A stretch of DNA of 64,000 nt, from the NCBI GenBank assembly GCA_020137815.1, contig CM035350.1, positions 10,044,001 through 10,108,000 of the forward strand. Direction: 5' to 3'. This document shows positions 1-10,602 of this stretch, in pieces. Position numbers and translations under genes: made by a program. The notes below the pieces were generated by a model. The model was not told the origin of the DNA, made no database searches, and was given only the letters and a program-made list of their open reading frames with translations. Source of the DNA: Hormiphora californensis. Taxonomy: Eukaryota > Animalia > Ctenophora. Position 1 is the first letter of the stretch. Each line of letters opens with the position of its first letter.

Positions 1-869
1 AATTGTCGCTAAGTTGATCTAGGGATTTAATGTTTAACAGATCGCAGAAATTTTTGTTAACGTAAATAGCAAGACCGCCTCCTTTACCACTGTAATCTGG
101 CGGGAATCTGGGTGAAGGGCTGATGGAAACCTTCCAGAGCCAGCTCCTCGCCGCTGAAAGGGAGATTAGAGGGGTTGCAATTGGTCTCGTTGAAACAAAG
201 GACGTCGAATTTCCTGAAGAAGCTCAAGTTCTCGTTAATATTTGTAATGCTCCCTGCTAAAGACCTGATGTTAGCAGAGAGGACTTGAAGCTCGCCAGTT
301 TTTTGAGTTTTGATGGCGGTGTGTGAGCGGTAATTACAGGATCTCAGAATTTCAGATGGTATTTCCCAATCCTCCGCGGATTCATCCGGAGAGGTATGCC
401 CTACATAGTTAATGAAGTTTTTGTGGTCGTACGGATTGAACGAGCTGGAGTTACGGCAGATGCGAGTGATGGGCGGGGCAACGTAGCCCGGAAGAACGTC
501 TCCAGCGCACGTCCTACAGCCTAGCGATCCCATGGAGCATTTGGGATGGGTGTAACGCTCACAGAGCCAGCATTGGCTCATCTTTGGGAGATTGCCAATT
601 TTTTTGCAGATGTGGCAGGTGATATTGTATAGTGCAGCGAGAGTAAGTGGAGTAGAGTTTTCATTTGTAGGGAGAAGATCTAGTGGAAGAGCTGATCTCG
701 TACATGGTTCACATGTCCAGGTACAAGCGAGGCCAGAATTTTCTAGGATAAGTATATCAGTAGGGGCTAAATTTACACACTTAGGGTGGAACGACATGTT
801 GCATTGGTGACAATTAACATTTTTCTTGTGTTTCCAAATTTTAGTTGTGCAGTTACTACAGTGCTGCAT
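1..869 (-). CDS. LINE ORF2 N-terminus: two PHD-like zinc fingers followed by APE endonuclease; frameshift near 90
   Basis: Two Cys/His clusters: CSNC..CHQC..HPKC..CEPC and CHIC..CWLC..HPKC..CRTC. APE motifs follow. After the stop at 84 the neighbouring frame reads SGKGGGLAIYVNKNFC. Confidence 0.8.
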
Positions 870-1172
870 CTGATGTTGGTAGTAGTTATTATACAAATAT
901 TATACGTTATGTAAGTAAAGTAATGAGGCTGGGGTGTTACTGAGAAGATTAGGGAACCTTATGTTCAGTAGCACAGCAGCCTAACAAAAAAGAGATAGGC
1001 TAGGCTAAGTTGAGAGTATTAGAAAGAAGAAGGTGGGGGTTAGGATTGGGGGGGGGGGAGGGGTTGAGAAGTTGAGTTTGGAAAGTTAAGTTAATTTGAT
1101 GTTGTGGGGACAGCAGGTTATAAAGTGAGCGTGTTGTGAATATAAAATGATGATTCAGATGACCCGTTGTGA

Positions 1173-2471
1173 TCAGCCTACATACCCCTGTATGTCTCTG
1201 AGTTCCGCTCTGAGTGGCCAGAGGCGCCAGCCCTGCCATCTACCCGGCCCACCATAGAGATGGTCGGTAAGGTGGATGGCGATGGACCTCGATAACCTAC
1301 GCTTGACGGTGGGGAGCAGGTGTATACCGTGACGTTCGTCCAGTATACGACTGCCCCTGCACCACAACCCTCTTGCTTCCGCATGAGTGTCAAGGAAGAG
1401 AAGGTTGGGGAGAGCACCTGATAACTCAAAAAGTTCAAAGTTCGTGTCCTTCACCTCATAATTGACCCATTTTCCAGTGGTGCGAGATGCCGTTTCTAGG
1501 AGAGAGTTTATCACGAACGTGGTGCCTGGATGTTTAACGCAAAGGCGCCGGATCATCGGACCCACTATCTCAATTAGAGACCATGCTCGGTGACCATATC
1601 TTGTGATGTCGTTGATGCCAGCCGAGATGAATACTGTATCAGTGCCCTCAAACATGTGGGAGTATTTGTCCAGGTCAGTTAGCTGATAGAACTGACGGTA
1701 TACCACCTGTAGACCTGGAATACCAGATGGGAAGTCCCTATCGATGCCACTGAACATAGAATCCGACAGTATTAGAACCCGTTTAGGAGGGCGCCGGGGA
1801 GTCTCGGGTTCTTTAACAGGGGGAACACGGGAAGGGGTGTCGGAGATGGGGATGGGGGACAGTTTACGGAACGTCAGTGAGATGCGGGGCTCCTTCACTG
1901 CTGGCTCCCTGGGAATACAGTGCTCCCAGTTCTCTTGGCATTCCCGGGAGAAAGCATACCCTGAACCATGATGCTGGGGATGGGTGAATGTGACCTTCGC
2001 CCCGGACAGGGATCTAATGTGGAGTGTCCTGGATGACCCGAGTGATACACAAACTATGTCACTGTCCTGACAGATTTGACCCTCATCATCCTGGTGCCAC
2101 GGGATGTTATAGTTACCATTCCTGTACAGGGTGACCAGGCACGAAAACTCCCCAATACCCTCAATTACCTCGGACAGCTTCTCTCTGATCTCGAATAAAG
2201 GCCCTTCAGTGGGGAAGGGGAGTGCTGGGTGGTACCTACCCCCATATTGATAGGAACTACCAAAGTTGGCGATATCTCGACTACCCTCTCTAGTGAAGTG
2301 GATAGTGGATGTCAGCTGCTCCACGGTGAATTGAGTGAGATTCAAGTTGAAAGACCTTACCGGGGAGACGGAGGTAGAGGTTACACTTGGGCTGGAGGAT
2401 TCACTACTGCTCGAAGATAGCGTCTGCGTCTCATCCGGACATGAGGGAGGTAGAGGGGGATTAGCTGTGAG

Positions 2472-2512
<41 letters not shown>

Positions 2513-2756
2513 GCTGCTGTAGTTGTTGTAACTCTCGGATTTGTTCCTTGAGCTCAGCAATATCAGACTTTGCTTTATCTAGCTGTTCAGTCAGCTCACA
2601 ACACACTTCACATTCCTTACTCCGCTCCTTCACACTCTTGTTCTTGACTCGCTCAGACTGTCGGAGGCTGTTGGTAGGAGGGCTTGATGTAGAACGTCTA
2701 CGGTCAGTCAACTTACCAGGGACGGCTGGGCGTGCCGGGGTGGATTTGGGAGGCAT
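1173..2756 (-). CDS. LINE ORF1 protein (527 aa): basic N-terminus, CxxC/coiled coil, polyQ, AlkB-like 2OG-Fe(II) dioxygenase, SGNH/GDSL esterase
   Basis: ATG at 2756 in gccgccATG context. AlkB motifs IPWHQDDE (HxD), VCVSLGSSR, WEHCIP and RISLTFR at ~1860-2330. SGNH blocks VLILSDSM, VFISAGINDI and HGIHL at ~1230-1780. Confidence 0.85.
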
Positions 2757-2875
2757 GGCGGCGGTGGGCGACCAGCCCCAGCAGCCCAAAGATGTTCTCG
2801 AAGCTAAATCAGGCGATCCTGCTGTCCCATGCGTTGTTATCAGTTTAGCAGAGCAAGATCAGTAGCAACATATCA

Positions 2876-2960
2876 TTGATAGAGAAATGTGAGAATGATA
2901 GAGAAATGTGAGAATGATAGAGAAATGTGAGAATGATAGAGAAATGTGAGAAATGTGGAA
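2876..2960. repeat. 19-bp tandem repeat (gatagagaaatgtgagaat) ~x4 next to the LINE 5' end
   Basis: Seen directly. Confidence 0.85.
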
Positions 2961-3507: not shown

Positions 3508-6500
3508 ATGAAGGAGCAGGCTGACTGGGAGCTACGCTCGGAAAGGTTTGTGTCATTCCCTTCCCAGCCCCATCCCAGCTGCACCAATTGTTTTTGTTGT
3601 TTGGATGATTGCCAAACCTTGGTAACCATGGTAACCTGAATCTTGTACTATTTGCAGAGTGGCTGATATTCTGATGGATTATCTGGACGTGACGGAGGGG
3701 GAAGATAGTCTTGATGAGGGAACACCTCTACCCAGCGAGGAGCCCATGGTGCCCCCATCAACTGGTTAGTACTACTGTTCTTTCTTCCACACCCTGCAAT
3801 TTCTCCACCCCATCAGGCAGCAACTGGTGCCATGCAGTGACTGTTCTGAGTTCTCGGTGCTATGTGTGTGTAACCATGGTAACCTTGGTAACCCTGATAT
3901 TTTACAGGTACCAACTGGTGCAGTGACTGTTCTCGGTGCTATGTGTGTGACTCTATCTCCAAGGAGGTTCATGCTATTTGTGCAGCACCAGCAGCTACCC
4001 TTGATATGGATTACCTGTCCAACCACCTCCAGTATCTTGTATCCACCACCCACAAACTCGTCCTAGCTGCAGCAGGTTAATGAGAATTAGGGCAAATTAG
4101 GGCACCCCTAGACCGTAGTTCAACAAGTTGTTGATAGCTAGCTAAATAAACATTGGATGGTTTAATTCTTTGGAATCACCGGGAATCACACATTTAACAC
4201 AACAGTTAACACAGAACATCCCCGGTTTACACACTCTTCCAAGAAGAAAACACACTTTCTCAAAACACCGCCTTCTTAAACACATACCACTCTTCAGAAC
4301 AAGATAGAGACGAGTTATCGGTCAGTTCCCAGTGTGATGTTAGTAGCACTACAGAGAGCAAGATGTCAAAACCACAGATCCTGTTGGAGAATTGGGATTA
4401 CGATACCTGCTATGAACCTCACCCTGACTGTAACCCATGCTATCCCTGCTCAATCTTTTCCCGTGAGGTAACCAATACAAACTCTATCCCTGTTCTATCT
4501 TTTCCTGTGAAGTAACCAATACAAACTCCATCTCTGCTCTATCTTTTAAAGCGTTACTCTCTAAACGCTCCCTCCAGGTCCATGGATATCTGAGAGCGAG
4601 AGCACGTCTAACAGCAAGTCATCACAAGGAGCTACTTGGACAGACCCTTGCTAGGAACCTCTCCCTTGCTGTTGAGAGATTCATCAGTTTTGCAGTGTTC
4701 CTTAAAACTGGAAACACGAGCTATTTCAAACCCAGGTAATTACATTTCACGAGTTATTTCAAACCCAGGTAATTACATTTCACTTTTGGCAATGCAACAA
4801 GGGTTCTTGGCTATGATATACTGCAACATGGGCCAATGGACACGTGCCAAGATTCCGTGTACTGTTTGTATCCGGTGTTCAGAGACCCGTGAGAGAGGGT
4901 CAGAACGAGAGATATTATCTGAACAATTGTAACGTGAGATTTCCCTATCTAACTAGTTGAGCTACAAGTTACTTGACACGATCTAATAGCATGTTCCCCA
5001 CAGAACGACAGTGAGACGGAAGGTATTGGAGAAGTTTGCAGACCTGATCCTGGCAGTGGTTCTCAAGCAACTAGCCGGAGAATCTGTAGACTTCCAAGCA
5101 GTGTTGTCAGAGACAATGAGAGAGCGCCCAATAATAACATCCTCCCTGGGTACCACAAACAACAGACAGACAAAGCAACATACAAATCAACATCTACAGA
5201 CGAATCTACAGACGAATCAACAGACAAAGCAACAGACGAGCAAAACTTTGACAACAAGGACCTCAGCCACCCAGCAGGCTAATCTCACAAAAACTAAAGC
5301 CGTTGAAAGACAGAGTAGACCTCCTCAGAGATCTGACAAGATAGGAGGAAGAAAACAGGGCAGTCCATCATCGGTTACTTCTAATTCTGGAGATCAACAT
5401 AAGCGGGTGTCTTCTCTTGAAAATAAACGGGTGTCCTCTCTTGAAAATAAGCGGGTTTCATCCTTAGAGACCAAGAGGGTATCGTCTACAGAGACCAAGA
5501 GGGTATCGTCCACAGAGAACAAAACCAGATCCAGTACCACTAATGTTATCAGGAAGAGTAAAAGCACCTCAGCTATCTCTAACCCCGGTCCTGTAAAGAA
5601 ACCCTTTGGGGGGTCCCGGGCAGACTTCAAAGTGTTCACGTACCAGGGCGGTGTTAGTAGTAGCTCTAACAAGAAAGTGGTAAAGTGCTCCAGTATGAGC
5701 AATCTAGCAGTGGATAGTGGTGGTGGTGGTGGGTCACCCGCTGGGTTCAGGAGCAGGAACACCAAGTACAGTCACATCAAGTCTAAAGTTGACAGTGGCA
5801 CTTCAAACCAGAGTGTTCCTGCAGGGAAAAAAGAACATAGTGTTCCTGTGAAGGGTTCAGGTGGCAGAAAGAAACCCTCTTCCCCAACCACTATAACATC
5901 AGGGTCTAAACCGCCCTCCAAACAGTCAACACCACCAAAAGACCCGGAATTGAGTGAGTTGATGTACGAAGTTAACGACCAGGAATTCCTAAGGAAGATG
6001 CGGGAGGCGACCCAGTCACCATCAGATGAGTTTTATGAGCTGGCGGCACAGGACTTCCAATCCTCTCACTACCAATCGCAGAACTTCTATTTTGACGCCG
6101 TGGATGGGATGGTAGAGGAGGGTGGGATGGTAGAGGAGGGTGGGATGGGAGAGGAGGGTGGGATGGGAGAGGAGGATCAGATGGAGGAGGATGAGGAGGA
6201 AGAGGAGGAGGAGGAGGAGGAGGAGGAGGAGGAGGAGGATGAGGAGGAGGAGGAGGGTGTGTTTATTGGTGATGATGATACTGCACTGAACACCCAACAT
6301 AACTCCCAATCCAATCATTCAGAATATCACGTTGGCCAGGATTCAAGGGTTCAAGATGTCCGGCACAGTAAACATCACCACAGCTCACAGCACACCAACA
6401 AGTCCCACTCGCAGTATAATAACACACCACAAAACACTAGTCATGGTGTTACTGACATCCAGAACATGACTCTCCATGATGTTAGTCTACACAGTGATAT

Positions 6501-9500
6501 CCAGATGGATTCATCCGGTGCGGAATTAGAGGTAGTAACTGATTCGCAGGAGATGGAGGTGGTAACTGATTCTCAAGAGATAGAGGTGGCAACTGATTCT
6601 CAATATGACGAGCAGATGGAGATAGAGATGGGAAAAAGACAGGGAGACAGAGAGGGAGAGAGGAAGGGAGACAGACAAGAAGAAAGAAGGGGACAGAGGC
6701 AGGGAGACAGACATGGACTAGTCCAGTCTCAAACCACTGCTCATCAGAATCACTATCTTACAGCTGACTATGTTGAAACTGTAAGTGAGGATGAGATTAG
6801 AGAGACAGTGCGGCAGACAGTTGATAGAATCAACTCTATCCAACAGCACCAGATAGACCATCAGGAACTGAATCATCAGGAACTGGATCACCAGGCTGTG
6901 ACACACCTCCATCAGACACACGACCTGACCCAGGCAGTCATACACGATCATCATGAAACAATCCAACTGGATCAGAGAGTTCGTTACCATGACAACCAGG
7001 ACGTGACGCAGGGAGTTCGTTACCATGACAACCAGGACGTGACGCAGGGAGTTCGTTACCATGACAACCAGGACGTGACGCAGGGAGTTCGTTACCATGA
7101 CAACCAGGACGTGACTCAGGGAGTTCGTTACCATGACCACCAGGATGTGACACAGGGAGTTCGTTACCATGACAACCAGGACATGGATCAGGGAGTTCGT
7201 TACCATGACAACCAGGAAGTAACGCAGGGAGTTCGTTACCATGACAACCATGACGTGACGCAAGGAGTTCGTTACCATGACAACCAGGACGTGACGCAGG
7301 GAGTCCGTTACCATGACAACCAGGACGTGACGCAGGGAGTTCGTTACCATGACAACCAGGGCGTGACGCAGCGTGCCTACTCGCAGGAAAGGGGTTCTGA
7401 CAATGTGATAACTCACACAGAGAGAACAGAGAGGGCTGCTAGTTATCCACCTGAGAGACCCGTTACTAGGTCACCAGAAGGAGCGGTTGCTATGGAAACA
7501 GCACTCTACAAACATGAAACCATTGATCGTCTGGACGTCTCTTCAGAGAAGAAGAAAGACAAGAAGATGAAGAAGGACAAGAAAAACAAAAAAGGAAAGT
7601 CCGCCCAAGGTTCAGATAATATGGTGAAGGATCACTATACTGAGCCAGATAACAGACCACTAGAAATGGCTCGGATTATGAGCCCTGAGGTCCCTATCTA
7701 CTACACTAAAGCGTCCCCCTCCCCTTGTAACCATGACGACGAGGAAGATGACGTCACAGCTTGTAAAACTCCCGATCTAAGACACCTCAGCTCCAGCTCT
7801 CCCCGGAAATCCCCCTACAACAAGCGAAGACAGGAGGAGCATGAAGGGAGTAGTGGTGGGAGCAGTATCTATCTGGACTCTGCTCTCTCCACTATATTCT
7901 CTGGGGAGGAATATCCAGCGAGAGGGAGGGGTGAGATGGTTACCTCTCCTGTTATACAAGAGGAGGAGGAGGAGGAGAGTGATAACTCCGTGTTCCAGAA
8001 CTATCTCATCTCTATGGCAACCACTGTACAAGACAAAACCACCAAGACTTCAGAGTCCTTTGACTCTGCTGTAGAGAGGTTAAACAATCTAGGAGAGGAG
8101 GATACCATGACTCTATCTGAGTACATGAGAGCCTTTAGTCCCCTCTATTCCAACATAATCAGTCGGAGCAGGAGCAGGAGTAAGGGTGATAGAGGGGCTG
8201 CTACGGATGTAGTAGATAACCGAACAGTTAGCAGCTGTAGTTTCAACGAGGCTGAGTTAGACGAGGAGGTGAGGAGGATTAACAGTCAGAGTAGTATGCT
8301 GACTGAGACACTTGGGAAGGTAGAGCACGTACTGGATGAGATAACTAGGATGGCGGGGGATGAGAGTACTGTAACAGGACCCGGGGAGCAGCAGCAACAG
8401 CAGCATGGTGGGGTCCAAGGTAGTGGTAGTGGGATGAGTGGGATAATGGATAGTTTGAACAGGGCTAAAGCTAACGTTGCAGAGGAGAAGGTTGCTATTA
8501 GGAGCAATATCAAGATGACCCAGAACAGAATCCAACAGTTCCCGATAGGTCCAGATAGGCAGGTCGAGAAGATGAGGAGTGAGAGTATGAAGTTGTTAAA
8601 GGAACATGAAGCAACACTAAGGAAGATCCTGAAGTATGAAACCAAGTTGGATAAATTAAAAGGTGCTGTGGCTGGGATCCTAAAAAAGCGGTCTGATATT
8701 GAGATAAGAATTCAGAGCAGATTGTCAGTAAGAGAAGGTGGTACCCCTTACAGCTTCACTCCAGTTCGAGGGAATACCCCTCAGTTGTCTGTTCGAGGAA
8801 ATACCCCTCAGTTGTCTGTTAGAGGTAACACCCCTCTATTGTCGGCAGGACCGAGTACAGTTAGTCTCTCTCAGGCACCATTTAGTAGCAGTAGCGTGTC
8901 CCAGCAGCAACTGATAAGCAGTGTATCACAAAGCAGTGTAGTGAGCAACACTCAGAGGAACAATGTTTCAGTGAAATCAGGTAGTGTTCCACAAGTTCAC
9001 CATGGCAACACACCACAGCAACAACATCTTGGCAACACACCGCAGCAACAACACCGTGGCAACACACCACAGCAGCAACACCATGGCAACACACCACAGC
9101 AACAACACCGTGGCAACACACCACAGCAACAACACCGTGGCAACACACCGCAGCAACAACACCATGGCAACACACCACAGCAACAACACCATGGCAACAC
9201 ACCACAGCATCACCGTGGCAACACACCAAAGGAACAACACCATGGCAACACACCAGAACATGAAATCGAGCAGAAATCTGGTAAAACTAAATCTCGGAAA
9301 AAGTCTAAGAAGAAGAACAAACGTCACAACAGTGACCATAGCAACACAGACCAGCACCATAGCAACACAGACCAGCACCATAACAACACAGACCAGCACC
9401 ATAGCAACACAGACCAGCACCATAGCAACACAGACCGCCACCATGGCAAGACAGACCGGCACCATAGCAACACAGACCGGCACCATAGCAACACAGACCG

Positions 9501-10602
9501 GCACCATAACAACACAGACCAGCACCATAACAACACAGACCAGCACCATAACAACACAGACCGGCACCATAGCAACACAGACCGGCACCATAGCAACACA
9601 GACCGGCACCATAGCAACACAGACCTGCACCATAGCAACACAAACCGGCACCATAGCAACACAGACCGGCACCATAGCAACACAGACCGGCACCATAGCA
9701 ACACAGACCGGCACCATAGCAACACAGACCGGCACCATAGCAACACAAACCGGTACCATAGCAACACAGACCGGCACCATAGCAACACAGACCTGCACCA
9801 TAACAGCACAGACCTGCACCACAGCAACACAGACCGGCACCATAGCAACACAGAGTGTGCGAACCAGACAATGTACTTCCAAGAGACAAGATCGACCCGA
9901 TCCAATTCTATCAGTAGTAACTCTGACCACTCATCCATATCTGGTGGGACAAGTCACAAGCGACGTGACACAAGTCTGATGAAACTGGCTGTATCTAACC
10001 ACATGCAATCAATTGTATCAGGTTCCACCAAGGCGATACACCCAGAGGGAGGCGATCCTTGTGACAATCGACCCCTCCTATCCAGCCTGCCTCTCTATCA
10101 AGATGTGTCTGCTGTGAAAAAGAGGGCAATCAGTATCTCTCCCCACAAAATGCCTGCTGCTGCTGTAAGATCTCCAACCAGCACCTCTCCCCACAAAATG
10201 CCCGCTGCTGCTGTTAGGTCACCACCCAGCATCTCTCCCCACAAAATGCCTGCTGCTGCGGTAAGGTCACCACCCAGTATCTCTCCCCACAAACTGCCTG
10301 CTGCTGCTGTTAGGTCCTCACACAGCACCTCTCCCCACATTATCTCCAACATTTCCAACATAGACCAGAGTGTAACAGAGGACAGCGACACCTCAACCTC
10401 TGGTATCGAGCTGACTAAGACAAGTAGGGTGGATATGTCTTGTATTGTAGCCAACAGTGATGAGGACTCACTAGGTTCAGATGTGGTGCTAACCCCTGCC
10501 CTGATGTATCCACAAGGACAGTTCTCAGAGGACGGTCTGGAGTATGGGACAGACCTGGCAGGGGATTTATTAGCAGAAAACAGACAGTACCAGTTATACT
10601 GA
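3508..10602 (+). CDS. Uncharacterised ~2000-aa low-complexity protein; exons 3508-3545, 3658-3764, 4298-4467, 4578-4735, 5004-10602
   Basis: GT-AG junctions with consistent phases join the small exons into the 1863-aa open frame. Contains an acidic tract, a coiled coil and several tandem peptide repeats. No domain recognised, and the start codon is uncertain. Confidence 0.7.
6976..7372 (+). repeat. Coding minisatellite, 36 bp x11 (RYHDNQDVTQGV)
   Basis: Seen directly; unit contains gttaccatgacaac. Confidence 0.95.
8998..9256 (+). repeat. Coding minisatellite, 27 bp (HHGNTPQQQ) ~x9-10
   Basis: Seen directly. Confidence 0.9.
9337..9853 (+). repeat. Coding minisatellite, 21 bp (HSNTDRH) ~x24
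   Basis: Seen directly. Confidence 0.95.

Follow-up and report, generated by a model that had tools for sequence, protein, structure and literature searches.

What might an AlkB-type demethylase do inside a retrotransposon protein? The question is raised by a locus of the ctenophore Hormiphora californensis, found in a stretch of 64,000 nt (assembly GCA_020137815.1, contig CM035350.1, positions 10,044,001 to 10,108,000), which as a whole is referred to here as the window. The locus carries open reading frame 1 (ORF1) of a long interspersed nuclear element (LINE), and the translated aa sequence of ORF1 joins an ALKBH2/3-type Fe(II)/2-oxoglutarate (2OG) dioxygenase to an SGNH esterase. ORF1 is on the minus strand and extends from an ATG at window position 2756 down to 1173 (527 aa and a stop codon). 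The frame is uninterrupted over window 1173-2789; 2756 is its first ATG, with the context GCCGCCATG, and the frame stays open 5′ of this ATG, to a length of 561 aa. The reading favoured here, which we hold to be moderately probable, is that the element is an APE-type LINE with CR1/L2-like features, and that the AlkB domain of its ORF1 protein (ORF1p) removes methyl lesions that block reverse transcriptase (RT) within the ribonucleoprotein particle (RNP).

The dioxygenase occupies aa 133-300 (window 1857-2360, minus strand). Pfam PF13532 (2OG-FeII_Oxy_2) matches ORF1 with an E-value of 1.9e-17 and 64.5 bits, the cut-off being 31.2 bits, and in a phmmer alignment the ORF1 motif residues fall on WHSDDE, QHRVP and RVNLTFR of human ALKBH3. 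Thus H221, D223 and H279 of ORF1 align to ALKBH3 H191, D193 and H257, and RISLTFR, which has R291 and R297 at its ends, aligns to RVNLTFR, the R-x5-R motif for 2OG and substrate binding. An AlphaFold2 (AF2) model of aa 140-527, made from a natural alignment of 95 rows, has a predicted local distance difference test score (pLDDT) of 91.8 and displays a double-stranded beta-helix core with the AlkB-type N-terminal extension. In an exhaustive structural comparison of this model, with which Foldseek is in agreement, the domain matches ALKBH3 (8jnr) with Z 20.3 (root-mean-square deviation (rmsd) 1.8 over 160 residues) and ALKBH2 (3h8o) with Z 20.1 (rmsd 1.6 over 159 residues). The Z-scores are 14.7 for ALKBH6, 14.5 for EcAlkB, 14.1 for FTO, 13.8 for ALKBH5 and 12.9 for ALKBH1. 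A profile built from the family gives a similar order against PDB sequences, with E-values of 1.5e-28 for ALKBH3, 1e-25 for ALKBH2, 1.4e-5 for ALKBH8 and 1.8e-5 for EcAlkB, and no match to ALKBH5 or FTO at E<=1.

An earlier note on this DNA, made from the letters alone, had described one unbroken ORF1 with a complete AlkB catalytic set followed by an SGNH domain, and had proposed profile searches and structure prediction as a check. Both the ALKBH2/3-type domain and the SGNH fold are recovered in this way. The frame is unbroken as described, its strand being minus, and the catalytic set is confirmed by PF13532, the ALKBH3 alignment and the fold match. The motif positions given in that note are exact: H221-x-D223 is at 2088-2096, H279 at 1920-1922, R291 at 1884-1886 and R297 at 1866-1868.

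Residue conservation was scored in 95 homologues that are 20-54% identical to the window copy. The Fe(II) triad is kept almost without exception (H221 and D223 in 95/95, H279 in 94/95), and so are the two Arg of R-x5-R (R291 in 93/95, R297 in 95/95). In the N-x-Y motif, a 2OG contact, Y211 is present in 94 of the 95, while the Asn position is Thr in 76 and Asn in 13. These counts bear on the possibility that the AlkB fold is mainly a single-stranded nucleic acid-binding or chaperone domain of ORF1p and that catalysis is dispensable. A structural RNA-binding domain is missing from esterase-type ORF1ps (Schneider et al. 2013, PMC3905857), which would leave room for such a role, and an orchid retrotransposon AlkB that carries the H448A mutation still binds RNA (PMC9289625). 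However, a pure structural binder would not be expected to keep the Fe(II) triad and the 2OG-binding Arg residues near-invariant among sequences 20-54% identical to the window copy, and we consider a dispensable catalysis quite improbable.

The SGNH/GDSL esterase domain covers aa 325-505 (window 1242-1784, minus strand). Pfam Lipase_GDSL_2 gives a sub-threshold match only (E 0.012), but the identity of the domain, which the earlier note had also proposed, is accepted because the AF2 fold, the sister LINE families and the family profile agree. In the fold comparison the domain matches the GDSL protein 4rw0 with Z 16.7 (rmsd 2.5 over 167 residues) and the platelet-activating factor acetylhydrolase (PAF-AH) 1bwp with Z 14.6, and many GDSL esterases are found at Z 14-16.5. 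Sister LINE families exceed the Pfam cut-off for SGNH, and the family-built profile scores the domain of the window copy at E 1.3e-55. The best SGNH sequence match of the family profile in the PDB is the GDSL lipase 3p94 (0.006), which is the top match of the L2 esterase too (Metcalfe & Casane 2014, PMC4120745).

The Ser of block I, the Asn of block III and the His of block V are kept (S333 in 95/95, N382 and H479 in 93/95 each), together with the block III neighbours G380 (93/95) and D383 (92/95), which form the motif G380-x-N382-D383. The Asp of the block V D-x-x-H motif is not kept; the position has Asn in 53 of the 95 homologues, Asp in 19, Arg in 12 and His in 7, the window copy being among those with His. 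D456, present in 87/95, could act as a stand-in for this Asp. No conserved Gly is found in the block II region among the 95 homologues. The fold class is the same as that of the ZfL2-1 esterase, of which 4c1b is a structure. It should be noted that the single ORF1 sequence has no match to 4c1b at E<=10 and the family profile has none at E<=1, and that 4c1b is not among the structural matches listed.

In the rest of ORF1p, residues 1-41 (window 2634-2756, minus strand) form a basic, disordered N-terminus rich in Arg, Lys, Pro and Ser, with an AF2 pLDDT below 50. Residues 42-97 (window 2466-2633, minus strand) are a single long helix in the full-length AF2 model, with pLDDT 87-94 over aa 50-90. 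The hydrophobic residues of this helix are heptad-spaced in a 3-4-3-4 pattern (L..L......I..L...I..L..L), and the segment is therefore described as a putative coiled coil. The helix runs into a polyglutamine (polyQ) run of 18 residues, coded by CAG and CAA on the minus strand at window 2464-2531, which extends it. A disordered Ser-rich stretch lies between the helix and the AlkB domain in the full-length model, and a Pro-rich basic linker of low pLDDT (PRRPPKR; aa 301-324, window 1785-1856, minus strand) connects the AlkB and SGNH domains.

Downstream of ORF1, on the same strand, a spacer of about 300 nt that holds a C-rich tract (window 870-1172) leads to the 5′ part of ORF2 (window 1-869). 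This part codes for two PHD-type fingers (~503-860; PF00628, 25.1 bits) and then the start of an APE endonuclease, and thus the earlier placement of ORF1 directly upstream of a PHD-APE ORF2 stands. When the intact ORF2 of a C2 relative is used as a tblastn query, one frame break becomes apparent in the APE of the window copy, between window 96 and 121. Past the break the ORF2 frame is open for 922 codons, with its stop at L022:7230 (G000:C1:10041230), and RVT_1 is found in it with an E-value of 3.6e-37 (L022:7230-9788), just beyond the start of the window; an RT does therefore lie downstream.

CR1/L2-type LINEs have a 3′ end in a microsatellite and not in poly(A). In the element described here the 3′ untranslated region (UTR) has a (CT)n run at L022 7020-7140 (G000:C1, just left of the window), and about 480 nt past the stop codon a (GATT)n-like microsatellite is present instead of poly(A) (L022 6745-6765). 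The esterase-type ORF1, the PHD fingers and the (GATT)n-like 3′ end are CR1/L2-like features of an indirect kind; ORF2 opens with a PHD finger in an L2 subgroup as well (PMC4120745). On the 5′ side, four tandem copies of a unit of ~19 nt, read from the sequence, form a presumed 5′ UTR repeat (window 2875-2955, minus strand), and the genome has no second full copy that would delimit the 5′ end of the element. Besides short weak matches, the window subfamily is represented elsewhere in the genome by one 412-bp fragment on C9, with 93% identity, i.e., it is approximately single-copy.

This low copy number speaks for another explanation, in which ORF1 is a host AlkB-esterase gene that lies beside a LINE by chance, or the locus is an assembly chimera. 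To this the genome itself provides an answer. Over its 110.7 Mb and 45 contigs there are 40 matches to PF13532, 35 of them above the cut-off. With the family profiles, AlkB and SGNH are found in one ORF at 21 of the 30 loci examined and in adjacent ORFs at 2 more, and these loci represent at least 7 divergent LINE families, termed A to G. The window ORF1 belongs to family A, which has open frames of 561 and 585 aa; ORF1 has 593-601 aa in family B, 473 aa in C, 461 aa in D, 523-531 aa in E, 517 aa in F and 503 aa in G. Both domains are above the Pfam cut-off in families C and D. Family G has seven intact copies and four that are truncated or extended. Most of the other AlkB-only ORFs in the genome are truncated relatives of families A-G, and 28 or more of the 30 loci examined derive from LINEs.

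The linkage to ORF2 also recurs. The C2 relative (L002/L023, G000:C2:9604000-9616559) has an ORF1 of 585 aa and a PHD-APE-RT ORF2 of 1236 aa, both intact. Its ORF1 shares 92% identity with a protein model of Pleurobrachia bachei, by which the genome described here is placed near Pleurobrachia. Behind ORF1 of families C, D and E comes another ORF, which continues into an APE-type start (CNVNGL; ...LNETW in D); the family G locus ends ahead of APE. Outside this genome, a 7-kb marine-metagenome contig (L066) has an AlkB and SGNH ORF1 of 599 aa and a Cys-rich-APE-RT ORF2 of 1165 aa, both intact. The earlier note had proposed a search of the genome for copies with this linkage; the AlkB domain is thus not confined to one copy, and the ORF1-ORF2 arrangement is found in several families and in an independent contig. 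A chance neighbour or a chimera has next to no probability on these grounds, and this explanation is rejected in view of the multi-copy families, with the 503-aa ORF in 7 intact copies as an example, and of the L066 linkage.

The true host ALKBH2 is, moreover, a separate gene. Its orthologue is a single 231-aa ORF at locus L036 (G000:C5:6327763-6331170, ORF 1486-2178, minus strand) that matches human ALKBH2 with an E-value of 1.4e-58. A recent capture from this gene was considered and rejected, because the host ALKBH2 is merely 30-34% identical to the LINE AlkB domains. As a separate observation, the motif QISLSNFF in the N-terminus of the host ALKBH2 looks similar to a PCNA-interacting box.

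Families C, D and E show additional features at the start of ORF2. The opening has a conserved MISxEQYRxxIGxFAGG sequence in C (L064, C5), D (L041, C8) and E (L047, C10), followed by a hydrophobic stretch resembling a membrane span, and a 2A-like ...(I/L/V)NPGP sequence is immediately ahead of APE (CNVNGL...). The NPGP sequence suggests ribosome skipping that would release a small N-terminal protein; 2A-like peptides have been described in APE-type LINEs (PMC3708506). The opening motif and the hydrophobic stretch are common to families F and G (L054, L055), whose loci end before the NPGP point. In family A (the window copy and L066) ORF2 starts with PHD fingers, and no NPGP is present. In addition, SGNH (PF13472) matches occur outside the AlkB loci in open frames of 569-1231 aa (G000:C7:4181881, C9:90969, C4:49995, C10:3298963 and others), and these may represent other esterase-carrying transposon architectures.

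How widely the two-domain ORF1 is distributed becomes visible when 1.84 billion representatives are searched exhaustively with HMMER. There are 4381 matches with E<=1e-3; a threshold of 1e-30 leaves 103, which are protein clusters at 50% identity. The matches at E<=1e-30 are mostly 450-700 aa in length and align over both domains. This breadth is not visible in a word-indexed homologue search, where the full ORF1 has 4 matches (the polyQ run swamps the search) and the domain and profile queries have 11 each. Named relatives are all from ctenophores, i.e., Pleurobrachia bachei (EukProt) and Mnemiopsis leidyi (KAL5248803.1, KAL5257292.1), and in the ESM Atlas the clusters of the type "2OG-Fe(II) oxygenase/GDSL-like lipase" carry the label "commonest Ctenophora". 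Relatives in metagenome annotation are labelled "alkylated DNA repair dioxygenase AlkB".

A maximum-likelihood tree joins the window ORF1 with sequences from Pleurobrachia and Mnemiopsis in a supported clade; families B-G, from the same genome as the window ORF1, make up a distant clade of their own. Since the window ORF1 groups with other genera and far from families B-G, the phylogeny indicates that the AlkB-SGNH fusion is older than the split of the sampled LINE lineages, and it is very probably older than the split of the ctenophore lineages sampled. The pairwise identities of the AlkB and SGNH domains correlate (r = 0.79), as expected if the two were inherited as one unit.

The earlier note had named neutral evolution of the AlkB segment as a finding that would speak against a function. 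Neutral evolution is not seen in families B and C: the Nei-Gojobori ratio of nonsynonymous to synonymous substitution rates (dN/dS) for AlkB amounts to 0.18 (family B) and 0.09 (family C), i.e., purifying selection, and for the SGNH domain of family B to 0.27-0.31. In family A the synonymous distance is saturated (window copy compared with C13 and C2) while the frames stay open. Thus the two-domain unit is retained under purifying selection across many deeply diverged ctenophore LINE lineages.

What the dioxygenase would contribute to such an element can be approached from its closest enzymes. ALKBH3 repairs N1-methyladenine (m1A) and N3-methylcytosine (m3C) in single-stranded DNA and in RNA, and both m1A and m3C block RT. 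From the ALKBH2/3-type character of the domain we infer the following role. ORF1p would multimerise through its helix and coat the element RNA in cis, and the AlkB module, whose fold is one that binds single-stranded nucleic acid, would do so within the RNP. There it would oxidatively strip methyl groups of the m1A and m3C type from the template RNA, and possibly from nascent cDNA. Such lesions disrupt the Watson-Crick face and stall RTs; their removal would therefore raise the yield of full-length copies. The AlkB domain may at the same time double as the structured nucleic acid-binding domain that is otherwise missing from esterase-type ORF1ps, and the esterase would keep a separate, lipid- or membrane-related role.

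Several points weigh against this reading. The purpose of lesion removal is by analogy with viral AlkB. The Asn that would bind 2OG is replaced by Thr in most homologues (76/95), and the Z-scores of the fold do not separate an ALKBH2-like (double-stranded DNA) from an ALKBH3-like (single-stranded DNA and RNA) enzyme. As for the window copy, ORF2 is frame-broken and the subfamily is approximately single-copy, and because of these two features the copy is probably dead as an element. One small RNA run of the species contained nothing from the stretch, which is no evidence of silence.

The substrate could also be of another kind. The AlkB domain may erase regulatory marks that the host places on LINE transcripts, such as N6-methyladenine (m6A) or enzymatic m1A, as a form of epitranscriptomic counter-defence. 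The conserved catalytic residues are in keeping with this as well. However, the main substrates of ALKBH2 and ALKBH3 are m1A and m3C, and the domain is of the ALKBH2/3 type, with Z 20 as opposed to 13.8-14.1 for ALKBH5 and FTO, and E 1e-28 for ALKBH3 as opposed to no ALKBH5 or FTO match at E<=1. A precedent for mark erasure is nevertheless available in an orchid Ty3/Gypsy element, where ORF2 codes for an active AlkB that demethylates m6A in vitro (PMC9289625), and a part of the same paper cites work in which m6A on LINE-1 and endogenous retrovirus (ERV) RNAs changes their fate. On balance we regard mark erasure as unlikely.

A role at the DNA level should also be considered, with m3C and m1A in nascent cDNA, at the nicked target site or in methylated element DNA as the substrates. 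Target-primed reverse transcription exposes single-stranded DNA, and a possible source of lesions is the m3C formed as a by-product of cytosine DNA methyltransferases (DNMTs); DNMT and ALKB2 are said to have co-evolved, as Rosic et al. reportedly found in 2018. The fold match to ALKBH2 bound to double-stranded DNA is also on a par with that to ALKBH3 (Z 20.1 and 20.3). However, the loop that connects the distal His and the first Arg in ORF1, CIPREPAVKEPR, resembles that of ALKBH3, RVPKEYHSREPR, and is without the RKK-type motif that we take to be characteristic of ALKBH2. ORF1p is moreover expected to meet RNA first, and an action on DNA has a small probability in our estimate.

If the lesion-removal reading is taken one step further, an ancient radiation of ctenophore LINEs may depend on a self-coded ALKBH3-like demethylase in ORF1p, a claim that is put forward tentatively and with less than even confidence. 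If it is true, m1A and m3C on LINE RNA or cDNA would be a natural barrier to target-primed reverse transcription; the methylation that forms the barrier would be either damage or host-written, and non-LTR (long terminal repeat) elements could evolve their own eraser. The arrangement of coiled coil (CC), AlkB and esterase would then constitute a new class of ORF1p in functional terms (CC-AlkB-esterase). One candidate for the means by which esterase-type ORF1ps engage their RNA is the AlkB domain, and its presence opens the direct question whether m1A or m3C on template RNA or cDNA limits retrotransposition. For annotation, the consequence is that an AlkB-family match in this genome derives in most cases from a LINE and is not a host repair gene.

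Elsewhere in the window, an ORF of 1863 aa on the plus strand (5011-10602) is without a Pfam match. It has a strong AT skew throughout, which is extreme at 9001-10000, where it reaches 0.73.

The known types of LINE ORF1p are RRM/CCHC, L1-like, PHD and esterase, and we know of no LINE ORF1p type that has a nucleic acid-modifying enzyme. None of the ORF1 types described in PMC3905857 and PMC4120745 has such a dioxygenase domain. The earlier note knew of no described AlkB module in LINE ORF1s, and in agreement with this a search of 8.4 million full texts, with Repbase and Dfam outside its scope, gave no description of AlkB as part of a LINE ORF1 or of a ctenophore transposon. The closest known ORF1p is that of ZfL2-1 (esterase Type IV; 4c1a/4c1b, PMC3905857), with which the protein described here shares a poorly conserved linker, a C-terminal SGNH domain with the esterase Ser, Asn and His, and an ORF1 that directly precedes a same-strand ORF2 with APE and RT; the N-terminal coiled coil of this type has a putative counterpart in the heptad-spaced helix. 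The protein differs in having an extra, complete ALKBH2/3-type dioxygenase of ~170 aa between the putative coiled coil and the esterase, in the block V Asp, which is mostly Asn, in the host phylum, Ctenophora, and in its sequence, which has no match to 4c1b at the E<=1 limit given above.

With human ALKBH3 and ALKBH2 the ORF1 domain shares the fold, the HxD...H triad and the RxxxxxR motif, at 27-28% identity. Unlike these enzymes, it is set in a retrotransposon ORF1p between a putative coiled coil and an esterase, it is without their N-terminal extensions, and the Asn of its N-x-Y motif is usually Thr. It is also distinct from the host's own ALKBH2.

Selfish RNA-templated elements with their own AlkB-family domain have precedents. 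In Flexiviridae-type plant RNA viruses the replicase includes an AlkB domain, by which viral RNA is repaired, and the orchid Ty3/Gypsy element is a second case; AlkB in ORF1p would be the third independent case in an RNA-templated replicator, and it would be the first among non-LTR elements and among animals. The orchid AlkB is ALKBH5-like, recent, confined to Phalaenopsis and part of an LTR element (PMC9289625). In contrast, the AlkB domain described here is ALKBH2/3-like, belongs to the ORF1 of a non-LTR element, is fused to an esterase, and is ancient and spread over ctenophore LINE lineages.

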